From the sequence record OQ708376.1: a stretch of DNA of 64,000 nt; one strand, 5' to 3'. Positions within the stretch are counted from its first letter, which is position 1, and each line of letters begins with the position of its first letter. A program made the translations under genes and the position numbers. This document shows positions 40,907 through 57,932 of the stretch, piece by piece. A model generated the notes under the pieces. The model did no database searches, was not told where the DNA came from, and worked only from the letters and a program-made list of their open reading frames with translations.

Positions 40907-41022
<116 letters not shown>

Positions 41023-41461: not shown

Positions 41462-42066
<605 letters not shown>

Positions 42067-42921: not shown

Positions 42922-43471
<550 letters not shown>

Positions 43472-43531
43472 TACAACCGACAATGACGAAAGAACAGTTA
43501 TCAACATTTATCAACGCAGCATTAGATAAAA

Positions 43532-43563
<32 letters not shown>

Positions 43564-43615
43564 TACCAAGCAGCTTGAAGAACTTTGTAGTGCTGCACCT
43601 ATGCCGACTCTTGGC

Positions 43616-43725
<110 letters not shown>

Positions 43726-43728
43726 TCT

Positions 43729-43818
<90 letters not shown>

Positions 43819-55088: not shown

Positions 55089-56054
55089 GTGAAAAAGCTT
55101 GATTTAAATACAATTGCCGAAGAAGTTCTGGATGAATGTTTTTCTAATGAAGAAGTCAACACACTAGAAGCCTTAGATTTCGTTGAAGATAAAGATGAAA
55201 ATGAAGGTAAAGTACAAAGCAGTTTCAAATATAATATTACACTTAAGCGACCACCAAATGTTTCCAATGAAGATCTAATTCGTGATATTCAAGCTGGTAT
55301 CAATGTAAAGAAAAACACTGAACTGTTAGTTCGTTACAATTATGGACTTATTATTGATGTAGCAAGTAAATGTACTTGTTATATCCCATTTGAAGATAAG
55401 ATTTCATATGGTGTTGAGGGGTTCATGAGAGCACTAAAAACCTTTGATCTTAATAAGAATGTGAAGTTCATTACCTATGCTTCTTCTAGTATTTACATGA
55501 CAGTTTATAACGAAAGTTCTGACGCTAACTATATGGTACACTTCCCACGTTATATGAGTGTTCATAAGATCAAAGTAAAAAGATTCTGTCAGGAATATAT
55601 GCGTAAACATGGTGTTCGCCCAACTCCTGAAATAATCTCAGAGGGTACTGGGATTGAGATTCAGCATGTTAATAACTGTTTGTTATTTCAAAGCGAATAC
55701 ACTTCTCTGGATGCACCATTAGACGGTGTTACCGATGGTACACTAGGTGACATTATTCATTCACCTGCTTCTGATTTTAACCTCAATGTTGATAGTATTC
55801 GTGCACCTTTACGTTATGCTATCAATGAACTGACTAACGAATTGAGTACTAAAGAACGTGAGATTATCCAGCGTGTTCATGGTCTAGGTGAATATGAACC
55901 TGAAACGCTTCGTGAGATTGCTGATAATGGTTTTGTTGATGATAATGGAAAATATGTTAAATCCCGTTCATCAATACACCGAAAGTACAGTGAAGCTATG
56001 CAAAAGCTTAAGAAGTTAGTACTTGCAAAAGGGTACGAATACGAAGATTTCTAA
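55089..56054 (+). CDS. RNA polymerase sigma70-family factor (regions 2-4)
   Basis: LLVRYNYGLI..VA, FEDKISYGVEGF.RA.KTFD...KFITYA, RPTPEII, SLDAPL, LSTKEREII..HGL...TLREIA; GTG start after AGGAG. Confidence 0.9.
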   Translation: MKKLDLNTIAEEVLDECFSNEEVNTLEALDFVEDKDENEGKVQSSFKYNITLKRPPNVSNEDLIRDIQAGINVKKNTELLVRYNYGLIIDVASKCTCYIPFEDKISYGVEGFMRALKTFDLNKNVKFITYASSSIYMTVYNESSDANYMVHFPRYMSVHKIKVKRFCQEYMRKHGVRPTPEIISEGTGIEIQHVNNCLLFQSEYTSLDAPLDGVTDGTLGDIIHSPASDFNLNVDSIRAPLRYAINELTNELSTKEREIIQRVHGLGEYEPETLREIADNGFVDDNGKYVKSRSSIHRKYSEAMQKLKKLVLAKGYEYEDF

Positions 56055-56060
56055 AGAACA

Positions 56061-56088
56061 AGGGTTGGCTTATGCCAACCTTTTTTTT
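56061..56088 (+). terminator. intrinsic terminator after the sigma gene
   Basis: AGGGTTGGC-TTAT-GCCAACCTT-TTTTTT. Confidence 0.85.
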
Positions 56089-56124
56089 ATGGGATGAAGT
56101 AAAAGTTTGTGATATAATTATCTT

Positions 56125-56598
56125 GTACAATTCTGTTGGCATGATATTCATGTACCTGATCCACTCGAAAACGTAGAGGGCAGTTGAGCAGTCCGACAGT
56201 GCGAACAGCAAAAGAAACCCGTTAGATGTGGGCATAGTTTGAACCCCTCACGGCAATGCGGCTGTATAAAGAACCACGTTAGGATAGCTGGTGGTTCCTT
56301 GATAGACATATAAGGATAACACCTTACGAATTATCTAAGGGAGAGTTATCGAATTTTGTACAGGAAAGTTGCGTCCAAAATTTGAGTACTCACATTAAGT
56401 ATTTGATTGCATAGATACTTAATGAAGATACACTATGTTTAAAAGTGTAGACCGTCATATGAAACTGAAGTAGAGAGAAACAGGATGACCCGCTTTCGCA
56501 CTCGTTATGAGTAATCTTCAATGCAATAGCTCTGATACCATCAGCGTCAAATTTCCCTCCTTGTGGGGGGAAGAAAAATCCCTTCCTCAAATCCCGTC
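56125..56598 (+). ncRNA. candidate large structured ncRNA (~470 nt)
   Basis: extended -10 TGATATAAT (56110-56118); no + ORF of 60 aa or more; more than 10 complementary helices including a 5'-to-internal long-range stem. Confidence 0.65.
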
Positions 56599-56612
56599 AA
56601 TATTAAAAGTCC

Positions 56613-56641
56613 TTGACAGTTATTAATCATTCGCGTAGAAT
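56613..56641 (+). promoter_or_regulatory. sigma70 promoter
   Basis: TTGACA-17-TAGAAT. Confidence 0.75.
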
Positions 56642-56705
56642 ACGTAGTATTAGAAGCGAACAGACATCTCGAAGAGATGGATGATTAACCATTAAGGAAT
56701 ATCAA

Positions 56706-56915
56706 ATGAATTCAGTAATCTTTTTAGTAGTCGCTTTCTCTGTTAATTCCGGTGTACAAATAACCCCAATGAATTCCATGAATCAATGCATAGCAGTACG
56801 TGATAGTACATACGAACAAGTAAACAAAGATATTTGGATTACAGTTAGTAAAGAACAAATGTGGTGTTACAATAGTAATACTAACACAAAGCTTATTGTA
56901 GGACAAACTCAATGA
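56706..56915 (+). CDS. small exported-type protein with two Cys
   Basis: hydrophobic N-terminus; S..QC...WCY; resembles 60474-60674. Confidence 0.7.
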   Translation: MNSVIFLVVAFSVNSGVQITPMNSMNQCIAVRDSTYEQVNKDIWITVSKEQMWCYNSNTNTKLIVGQTQ

Positions 56916-57142
56916 GTTATGGCGTTCGTTTTGAGATTCGTTCTATTGTCATCAATGCAGAGAAACAAGTATCGTTGGATGGTGATATACGTGAAATTTA
57001 TCTATCATGTATCCGTGCGAAATCTGAAGCAGATGCCTTAGTACAAATGTATAGTTTTAACTTTTCAAATGGATTCTATTTGGTACGAGTTATTGAAGTG
57101 AAAAAAGTACTTATTGGTTGTAGCATAGAAGGATTAATGTAA
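56912..57142 (+). CDS. small hypothetical protein (A...DA family)
   Basis: IRAKSEADALVQM. Confidence 0.7.
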   Translation: MSYGVRFEIRSIVINAEKQVSLDGDIREIYLSCIRAKSEADALVQMYSFNFSNGFYLVRVIEVKKVLIGCSIEGLM

Positions 57143-57143
57143 A

Positions 57144-57932
57144 ATGAGCACTATAGATGAACTGATTCGACGGAATTCAAAATATTACCAACCATCAGAA
57201 ATTGTAGGTAACATTACCAAATCAGAGTTTGGTCCAAATACTCGAAAACTCATTCATGTAATGTCACGTGATGGCTTTAAATGTGATTGTTGCGGTGAAT
57301 CTAATGTAGTATTCACTTTACACAAGCACAGTACTAAAGATCGTTATAAATTCAGACCTTATGTACTTAAAGGGAAACGCCTTGTACGCATGACGTTAGA
57401 CCATAATGTACTGGACTGTCTTCAGGGCGGTAATGATAAAGAGAACATGACTGCACTGTGTGAAGATTGTAACGCATTACGCCAGCATAAGTTTGCTGAA
57501 TACAGTGAGTTTAAACACTGGTATAATAACGCGGATCGTTCAATCGAGCCTGACGTTAACTACTGCTTCATTGAGTACATTAAGAATGCCAAAGATACAT
57601 ACATTCTTAAATCAATGTCACCTATTACCGTGTTTCCTGAGAACCTATTCACTACATTAAAGAATAGTTTTATTGTAGGTGATATTGATGCATTCAAGTA
57701 TTTTGACAAAGGTGCAAAACATTTTGAAATTCAATGTCTTAGTACTGCACTATGTGAACTCATTAAAATTTACATAAAAGAGTATTTGGGTATTGACAAT
57801 GTACGTGTACCAGAGTATACTTTTTCTATTGAATTCGATTGTGAATCAATCAAAGAGTTTGGAATTCTTTTCAATAAACAAATAGAACTTGCAATTCAAA
57901 ACGAAATCAAGTACTATACTACTAACATTTAA
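57144..57932 (+). CDS. HNH endonuclease with Zn finger
   Basis: RDGFKCDCCG...TLDHNV...GGNDKENMTALCEDCN. Confidence 0.8.
   Translation: MSTIDELIRRNSKYYQPSEIVGNITKSEFGPNTRKLIHVMSRDGFKCDCCGESNVVFTLHKHSTKDRYKFRPYVLKGKRLVRMTLDHNVLDCLQGGNDKENMTALCEDCNALRQHKFAEYSEFKHWYNNADRSIEPDVNYCFIEYIKNAKDTYILKSMSPITVFPENLFTTLKNSFIVGDIDAFKYFDKGAKHFEIQCLSTALCELIKIYIKEYLGIDNVRVPEYTFSIEFDCESIKEFGILFNKQIELAIQNEIKYYTTNI

Follow-up and report, generated by a model that had tools for sequence, protein, structure and literature searches.

Large phage-borne RNAs already have precedents. GOLLD and ROOL, two large and ornate RNAs borne by phages and prophages, assemble into multimers made of RNA alone (bioRxiv 10.1101/2024.12.08.627333, PMC5737381). 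Long noncoding RNAs have also been detected by RNA-seq in the Pseudomonas jumbo phage PA5oct, for example ncRNA002 (451 nt), which makes up as much as 5% of the phage reads; four ORF-free loci of 236-619 nt are transcribed in this phage, two of them highly (PMC7318152). The PA5oct RNAs are the nearest published item to the RNA described here, which occupies 56125-56604 on the + strand of the window (the 64-kb stretch of record OQ708376.1 that was analysed). PA5oct is distantly related to the Rak2 group of jumbo phages, and its RNAs show no sequence similarity to the profile of the new family and contain none of its invariant motifs.

The RNA resembles GOLLD and ROOL in size, in its elaborate conserved fold, in its carriage by phages and prophages and in the lack of a constant protein neighbour. 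It differs from them in that neither Rfam model matches it, and in that it is found in enterobacterial hosts and their jumbo phages, with four to five diverged paralogues per genome. A large, conserved, multi-domain fold that is borne by phages or prophages and has no constant protein partner, which is what sets the GOLLD/ROOL kind apart, is found here as well.

Other structured RNAs invite comparison. RNase P RNA and group I introns are large pseudoknotted ribozymes with invariant junction bases and swappable peripheral modules. The jumbo-phage RNA shares with them a comparable size, long-range pseudoknots, invariant junction bases and swappable modules; in contrast to them it is matched by no covariance model, has its own promoter and interrupts no gene. 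A group I intron was considered and rejected, since the locus lies between a terminator and a promoter, has its own -10 element and is flanked by separate, complete ORFs. 6S RNA is rod-shaped and ~180 nt long; its central bubble imitates an open promoter, and it binds the sigma-70 holoenzyme. The likeness is that of a presumably stable non-coding RNA which, in one genus, adjoins a sigma-factor gene in its window-type copy; the differences are the lack of a model match, 16 helices and 5 pseudoknots without a closing rod, and a sigma adjacency that is not conserved. ColE1 RNA II and the put RNAs of HK022 are structured plasmid or phage transcripts, driven by a promoter and acting in cis on the locus that encodes them, the put RNAs occurring in two similar copies. 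These are far simpler, and one paralogue of the RNA described here has nothing downstream to control. A tmRNA or other tRNA-like molecule was also rejected, ARAGORN finding no tRNA-like domain and neither tRNA nor tmRNA at 56 kb; the seven tRNAs that it reports are all at 40-44 kb.

Searches with the covariance models of Rfam 15 (4,227 models, including GOLLD, ROOL, raiA, OLE, HEARO, 6S, RNase P, tmRNA and group I and II introns) returned only tRNAs from the window at the gathering score. With E-values of up to 10 allowed for 55900-56900, only terminator-type sRNA noise of at most 19 bits was obtained. Ten further phage and metagenome members gave noise only at E up to 1, and four bacterial loci gave, at the gathering score, only a TPP riboswitch elsewhere. 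The preliminary description of the locus had proposed such a screen, and by its outcome the RNA matches no described family. No published description was found in the literature searched, including the paper on phage Sharanji, a 2026 review of jumbo phages and a 2026 survey of non-coding families. The RNA family itself is real and strongly supported, and it has no detectable relative in Rfam 15, in annotations or in the papers covered.

The surroundings of the RNA are well marked. The upstream ORF (55089-56054) gives matches to Sigma70 r2, r3 and r4, of which only r3 exceeds the Pfam cut-off while r2 and r4 fall just below it; a phage sigma factor had been proposed here. This gene ends in an intrinsic terminator (56060-56092, + strand; a 10-bp stem at 56060-56083 and then a T run), which is also annotated in the G17 and UE-S1 records and forms the upstream boundary of the RNA unit. 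After it comes, as had been noted, an extended -10 element, TGATATAAT, at 56110-56118 on the + strand and without a -35; its spacing predicts a start at ~56125-56127. This motif occurs 26 times in the window compared to 8.75 expected and is also found ~10 nt ahead of the tRNA genes at 40914 and 41961. TGnTATAAT precedes each of the four paralogues, and relatives from other genera have it as well. With its own extended -10 of the tRNA-gene type, the RNA appears to be expressed like the stable RNAs of the phage. That there is such a transcript, where it starts and stops and how stable it is are predictions. The RNA gene would measure ~480 nt, with a conserved core from ~56127 to 56601-56604, where the similarity of relatives stops; the family profile matches 56139-56603 with an E-value of 5e-104 (nhmmer).

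The locus has a G+C content of 0.40-0.44 as opposed to ~0.30-0.35 upstream, and so is indeed richer in G+C than its surroundings, as had been observed. It has no credible ORF: the largest ORF in the ORF list that overlaps 56110-56598 has 75 amino acids and is on the minus strand. The statement that this is the longest stretch of the window without a credible gene holds for a cut-off of 80 aa applied to the ORFs of both strands (56055-57143); for a cut-off of 45 aa applied to the + strand the stretch (56055-56705) ranks second. Sequence records place between one and six short hypothetical ORFs over the locus, and UE-S1 marks it as a 'repeat_region'; an RNA annotation is absent from every record examined.

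On the 3' side, no intrinsic terminator of the RNA was found in the window, so that the window copy may be read through into the downstream genes. Those genes have a sigma-70 type promoter (56613-56641, + strand; 11 of 12 matches) that lies outside the RNA and marks its downstream boundary. The window's 262-aa ORF is named HNH endonuclease in 121Q and has no Pfam match. Proteins of ~260 aa that are encoded downstream of other members are orthologous only inside one syntenic group and are unrelated to this ORF; no protein family was found as a constant neighbour across the members. Paralogue c2 is flanked by divergent and convergent genes and is followed by none in its own orientation, and the same is true of the copy in phage Munch, which argues against a leader role for the family. 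In one paralogue group the order of elements is promoter, terminator-like hairpin with a T run, and RNA.

The RNA had been called an orphan, and this proved wrong. The window belongs to Asteriusvirus, the 121Q/PBECO4-type Rak2-like jumbo coliphages, and its RNA region is 100% identical in slurp01, SP27 and CRJP21. Sensitive BLASTN detected relatives ~70% identical over ~430 nt in at least five genera. These include Eneladusvirus (Serratia phage BF and Yersinia phage fHe-Yen9-04) and Mimasvirus (CBB, GAP32 and XbC2), with further matches in Salmonella phages Munch and 7t3, Erwinia phages and others. Each record has three to five matching places, all in unannotated gaps of 600-700 nt or beneath short 'hypothetical proteins'. 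In OR844650.1 a profile built from 25 members located four full-length copies on the same strand, at ~18, 128, 208 and 261 kb. Self-BLAST found no second copy inside the 64-kb window. Exact-pattern scans with 22 specified bases from invariant columns gave 80 matches in metagenomes and 62 in IMG/VR, 52 of which are on contigs of 345-378 kb, usually with four or five each, and two in RaK2. The INPHARED records that match are all 310-386 kb genomes of the Rak2-like clade or one of two short records of Klebsiella phage phiKp_21. A looser, gapped pattern of 14 bases run on IMG/VR returned chance matches; used as negatives for the profile, these gave one match among the matches listed, and it was a true member. 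The RNA is present in more than 70 sequenced phages, and the sequences fetched contain 94 unique full-length members. A jumbo genome has four to five paralogues, and copies are found in chromosomes of bacteria too.

The paralogues fall into groups whose members are 82-96% identical between Eneladusvirus and Mimasvirus, whereas different groups within one genome are only 57-75% identical. Three of the Asteriusvirus paralogues are syntenic across genera, in the regions of the sigma gene, of EndoVII and of methyltransferase/cytidylyltransferase genes. Cross-genus identity and synteny together indicate that the copies are old and separately maintained, and the contrast between the two ranges of identity points to separate, specialised roles rather than to dosage alone. 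The link to the sigma factor suggested in the preliminary description fares poorly in this comparison. Only the window's paralogue adjoins the sigma gene; in fHe-Yen9-04 that gene is ~1.8 kb upstream, and the neighbours are unrelated in Serratia phage BF, CBB, GAP32, Munch, XbC2 and at the other three Asteriusvirus paralogues.

The window sequence on its own gives little sign of structure, with single-sequence folding no better than that of shuffled sequences (z of -1.1 for the + strand and -1.6 for the - strand). The window alone could therefore not have proved a fold, and the proof is comparative. RNAalifold applied to 25 members gave 70 pairs, 41 with compensatory double changes. The 94 unique full-length members were then aligned, column pairs were ranked by APC-corrected mutual information, and the helices so obtained were pair-counted. 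For the resulting 105 pairs, 89% of cells are canonical and 74 pairs are compensated by double changes; with the 3' partner slid by one or two columns, the canonical fraction is 0.3-0.5 for most helices. The variable hairpins P1, P6, P11 and P15 are imperfectly aligned, so that their counts are underestimates. The large structured RNA proposed from the window alone is thus borne out by covariation across the 94 members and without an Rfam match. The fold consists of ~16 helices and five pseudoknots, together with many invariant unpaired bases; in the 25-sequence alignment ~110 positions are invariant, and many of these lie in junctions. The + strand often has G-U pairs where the opposite strand would carry A-C mismatches, which fixes the + strand as the one transcribed.

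All elements of the fold are on the + strand. Near the 5' end, 56133-39 pairs with the loop of P3 (56193-99) as PK1. Its complementary run has a mean of 7.3 nt compared to 5.0 in shuffles, and at least 6 bp can form in 87% of the 94 members, with many different compensated sequences. P1 (56140-44/56148-52) is a hairpin missing in two bacterial or metagenomic members, where the -10 element abuts P2. Hairpin P2 (56156-66/56176-83) has 8 pairs that are 92% canonical, 7 of them double-changed, and a conserved apical loop; it is followed by the P3 hairpin (56188-90/56200-02), whose loop is the partner in PK1. P4 (56205-09/56261-65) is 99% canonical with four of five pairs compensated, and encloses P5 (56219-22/56250-53, 98% canonical) and the P6 hairpin (56225-32/56244-49, 79% canonical, five of six compensated), for which some paralogues have a longer alternative. 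PK2 (56256-58/56307-09) connects the P4/P5 junction with an invariant block at 56301-56306; it is 98% canonical, with two of three pairs compensated, and falls to 0-1% canonical when slid one column. All seven pairs of the P7 hairpin (56271-77/56291-97) are compensated. The P8 hairpin (56311-15/56322-26), also pair-counted in the 94 members, forms PK3 through its loop (56316-20 with 56345-49), a pairing that recurs with different letters in relatives. Between the two lies an AAGG (56337-56340) that is invariant in 94 of 94 members, a count that applies to these four letters, the flanking letters of TAAGGGAG being tabulated in part.

The 3' half starts with the peripheral module P9 (56352-58/56376-82), ~30 nt long at 56352-56382, and the long P10 hairpin (56393-404/56413-24), in which 11 of 12 pairs are compensated. 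The P10 loop (56406-11) pairs with 56522-27 to form PK4, 94% canonical and with all six pairs compensated; PK4 is strongly supported, as is PK1. Most relatives have a shorter P11 hairpin than the window (56429-34/56444-49). The core knot is made up of P12 (56466-70/56516-20) and P13 (56473-77/56493-97), each 100% canonical with four pairs compensated, and of PK5 (56454-58/56485-89), which crosses both and is 100% canonical with three compensated pairs. P14 (56500-04/56508-12) is a hairpin with five of five pairs compensated. The P15 hairpin (~56532-56548, within a feature at 56532-56551) varies in register and carries the direct repeat DR1. More than half of the representatives have a terminator-like hairpin and/or a T run after P15/DR1 and before P16. 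The P16 hairpin (56553-60/56565-72), a C-rich strand against a G run, is 88% canonical with G-U changes only; its G run is kept in nearly all members.

The sequence letters quoted in the preliminary description are all present where it had placed them, and nine of the 13 helices drawn there from one sequence turn out to be right, including the pseudoknot; the other four are unsupported. Covariation supports CATGA/TCATG, GAACCAC/GTGGTTC, TAAGG/CCTTA and GTCAT/ATGAC, as it does CATTAAGTATTT/AGATACTTAATG, while TTCCCTCC/GGGGGGAA is conserved and backed by G-U changes only. The suggested ATAAC-GTTAT pseudoknot is PK3, for which there is covariation and a weak run-length statistic (4.0-4.6 versus 3.3-4.0). 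TACACT/AGTGTA is a hairpin found at the same place in relatives in poorly aligned columns, and CTGAT/ATCAG is one of two registers that occur in the family. Of the helices that were not sustained, GTACAATTC/GAATTTTGTAC used the 5' end, which instead pairs with the loop at 56193-56199; both strands of CTGTT/AACAG have other, covarying partners; and the CTTCA (56516-20) of the long-range helix between TGAAGAT (56422) and ATCTTCA covaries with TGAAG at 56466-70. CCTTGATAG/TTATCTAAGG lies in invariant columns and shows no compensation. The proposed search for homologues and covariation thus had a positive outcome, BLASTN yielding relatives and 74 of 105 pairs being compensated.

Two features of the RNA are unusual and offer concrete handles for structural work, a movable peripheral module and a pair of repeats that change in concert. 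Some members lack the P9 module, others have it at the tip of P14 instead, and paralogue c3 has it at both sites. Peripheral tertiary-contact modules of large ribozymes show the same movable behaviour. The repeats are DR1 (56538-56551), partly within P15, and DR2 (56588-56601), the last conserved block, both on the + strand. At the column pair 56541/56592 the 94 members have T in both repeats (58) or C in both (36), with no discordant case. The pair 56550/56600 is G/G in 52, A/A in 33 and discordant in 9, and 56538/56588 is C/C in 86, A/A in 3, G/G in 4 and discordant in 1. The CGTCA core has three rare variants, each of which occurs in both repeats of the same molecule. The variable letter differs among the paralogues of one genome, which implies that it is read in cis, by the molecule or locus, and not by one shared protein. 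No segment complementary to DR1 and DR2 and covarying with both was found. A helix between the flank of the G run (56570-75) and DR2 can be formed in most members and was rejected because its changes are uncompensated. When a purine column tracking the variable letter was sought, only the P14 pair 56501/56511 did so, at 83-87%.

Copies are also found in bacterial chromosomes. Among 185,579 species-representative genomes the exact pattern matched four, with full-length copies in the chromosome of Serratia fonticola, in Serratia sp. 2723, in Silvania hatchlandensis and in an Enterobacteriaceae MAG; profile E-values are 1e-68 to 1e-102. For E. coli, copies occur in 2 of 5,426 complete genomes, and the plasmid collection gave no match. 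The contexts of these copies are mobile or temperate, and the loci look like prophage-like islands. A large serine recombinase gene is directly upstream of the RNA in Serratia sp. and Silvania, and in S. fonticola two ParB-like genes separate the recombinase from the RNA. In Silvania and the Enterobacteriaceae MAG a gene for a CI-like S24 repressor is convergent with the RNA. In E. coli LR-29-1 the RNA lies within a 10.7-kb island between ffs and ybaA. Alongside an IS3 element, a resolvase and fragments of an integrase, the island encodes DUF4326, DUF488 and dual-OB proteins; RefSeq has no annotation over the RNA. The only island protein in common with the jumbo genome is the DUF4326 protein, which is not adjacent to the RNA. 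No phage sigma gene was found near the bacterial copies within the 8-40 kb examined.

The members form one conserved family with a common fold on the + strand and without a constant neighbour. The explanation that we consider probable is a stand-alone, promoter-driven, folded RNA particle that acts in trans, of the same kind as GOLLD and ROOL and with old, specialised paralogues; action in trans as a particle we infer by exclusion and by analogy. Four paralogous genes would encode such a stand-alone RNA, ~480 nt in length, and 56125-56604 of the window would be one of them. Host RNA polymerase with sigma-70 would initiate at ~56125, and the transcript would fold into one compact particle with its 5' end locked in the P3 loop. 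Such a particle could work by itself, in multimeric form or together with a protein whose gene lies elsewhere; it would be neither a leader nor an antisense RNA, nor a partner of the sigma factor. The 3' part, with P15/DR1, the optional terminator-like hairpin, P16 and DR2, would most likely set alternative 3' ends or conformations. That E. coli jumbo phages carry here a large RNA of a new class, catalytic or self-assembling, which itself reads DR1 and DR2 as twin sites and whose paralogues are specialised, for example as subunits or as variants with different targets, seems to us rather unlikely. About the same can be said of a self-processing large ribozyme that reads DR1 and DR2 in cis as two copies of one substrate site, so that the RNA is cleaved, an end is formed or the P16 segment is excised. 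The many invariant junction positions and the five pseudoknots amount to a ribozyme-like architecture, and the perfect agreement at 56541/56592, the rare CGTCA variants shared by both repeats and a reader in cis would fit such an activity; on the other hand, no Rfam ribozyme family matches and no segment covaries by complementarity with both repeats.

A leader that acts in cis, as an antiterminator or in the manner of a riboswitch, and governs read-through into the downstream genes is improbable. The window RNA does lack a terminator and has co-directional genes downstream, many members have a terminator-like hairpin and T run between DR1 and P16, and one paralogue group has its terminator-like hairpin between promoter and RNA. 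However, only opposite-strand genes follow the c2 and Munch copies, the RNA is convergent with the repressor gene in prophage-like islands, the window's downstream genes have a strong promoter of their own right after the RNA, and the downstream genes vary among paralogues; size and complexity are also well beyond those of known leaders. A constant place upstream of a co-directional gene was looked for and the idea rejected, with c2, Munch and the prophage copies all having convergent neighbours. Decidedly improbable as well is an origin-associated primer RNA of the ColE1 RNA II or T4 origin-transcript type, the dispersed copies being origins and the islands having borrowed the element. Four or five copies spread over 350 kb on one strand, the runs of G and of C close to the 3' end, the short repeated motifs and the mobile-island copies beside ParB-like and recombinase genes would suit it, but three of the four copies show no GC-skew inflection, the skew follows gene orientation, no initiator gene is adjacent, and to our knowledge no primer RNA has five pseudoknots or so many invariant unpaired bases set close together. 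A 6S-like RNA that binds the RNA polymerase holoenzyme, to which the sigma gene next door in Asteriusvirus had given rise, is very unlikely: neither the relatives nor the other three paralogues keep that adjacency, the Rfam 6S model finds no match, the fold is knotted and multi-helical rather than a rod with a central bubble, and bacterial islands lack a phage sigma gene in the 8-40 kb examined. The least credible reading dispenses with RNA in favour of a protein gene that has decayed or of a repeat at the level of DNA, for example an array of protein-binding sites. It could draw on the one to six short hypothetical proteins of some records, on the 'repeat_region' of UE-S1 and on the direct repeats, yet no reading frame is conserved, and the compensatory changes, with their G-U pairs on one strand, are typical of an RNA; covariation refutes it. 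A small ORF after P16, which begins at the only recurrent ATG, was rejected since neither its frame nor its start is preserved, the ATG being missing in the window and the frame changing in the 261-kb paralogue.

We know of few RNAs with comparable conserved tertiary structure, and nearly all of these are ribozymes, ribonucleoprotein cores or, recently, RNA-only cages. The carriers of this one include phage isolates that grow on E. coli K-12 (for example, Sharanji on MG1655), which makes the RNA open to direct study. In the annotated genomes of Rak2-like phages, four or five of these RNA genes per genome are covered by spurious small ORFs.

The extended -10 motif TGnTATAAT occurs 26 times in the whole window where 8.75 sites are expected (roughly a 3-fold enrichment), with 20 of the 26 on the + strand. 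One copy (40914-40922) lies about 10 nt upstream of a tRNA-Ser gene, and another (41961-41969) about 10 nt upstream of a second tRNA-Ser gene; this placement suggests that the phage drives its stable RNAs from promoters of this type. In one paralogue group of the RNA, a strong hairpin resembling a terminator, T run included, separates the extended -10 from the RNA that follows (loci L031:2830-2880, L002:2400-2475 and L007:1900-1960). This order could yield a very short transcript or reflect conditional read-through.

Short 'hypothetical protein' CDSs have been placed within the RNA genes in some records, 1-6 per locus. Examples are GAP32_503A in phage GAP32 (L005:2312-2425) and G17_00407 in phage G17 (L163:3300-3455). 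These are very likely spurious calls. Window 57144-57932 holds a 262-aa ORF that is called an HNH endonuclease in 121Q. No Pfam family matches it at E up to 0.01, and the proteins of similar size that other genera encode downstream of the RNA are not related to it.

A stretch of about 590 nt upstream of tRNA-Thr (window 43141-43734), contains only minus-strand ORFs of 52-69 aa. It has no match in Rfam, and its conservation is confined to Asteriusvirus, with indels. The published lncRNA ncRNA004 of the Pseudomonas jumbo phage PA5oct ends (L290:1680-1735) in a C-run/G-run hairpin shaped like P16, the family's 3'-part hairpin, but beyond this shape it bears no likeness to the family.

The RNA is also found in bacterial chromosomes. 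In E. coli LR-29-1 (NZ_AP027515.1) it resides in a 10.7-kb island flanked by ffs and ybaA (L288:15900-26650). The other cargo includes IS3, integrase fragments, a resolvase, and DUF4326, DUF488 and dual-OB proteins. Of these, the DUF4326 protein is 41% identical to a relative encoded in the jumbo phage (OR844650.1, ~221 kb). In Serratia fonticola (L207:4775-5490), the RNA-bearing end of the island directly adjoins two neighbouring 87-aa Rof (Rho-modulator) genes, a pair that may represent a duplication tied to the island's insertion site.
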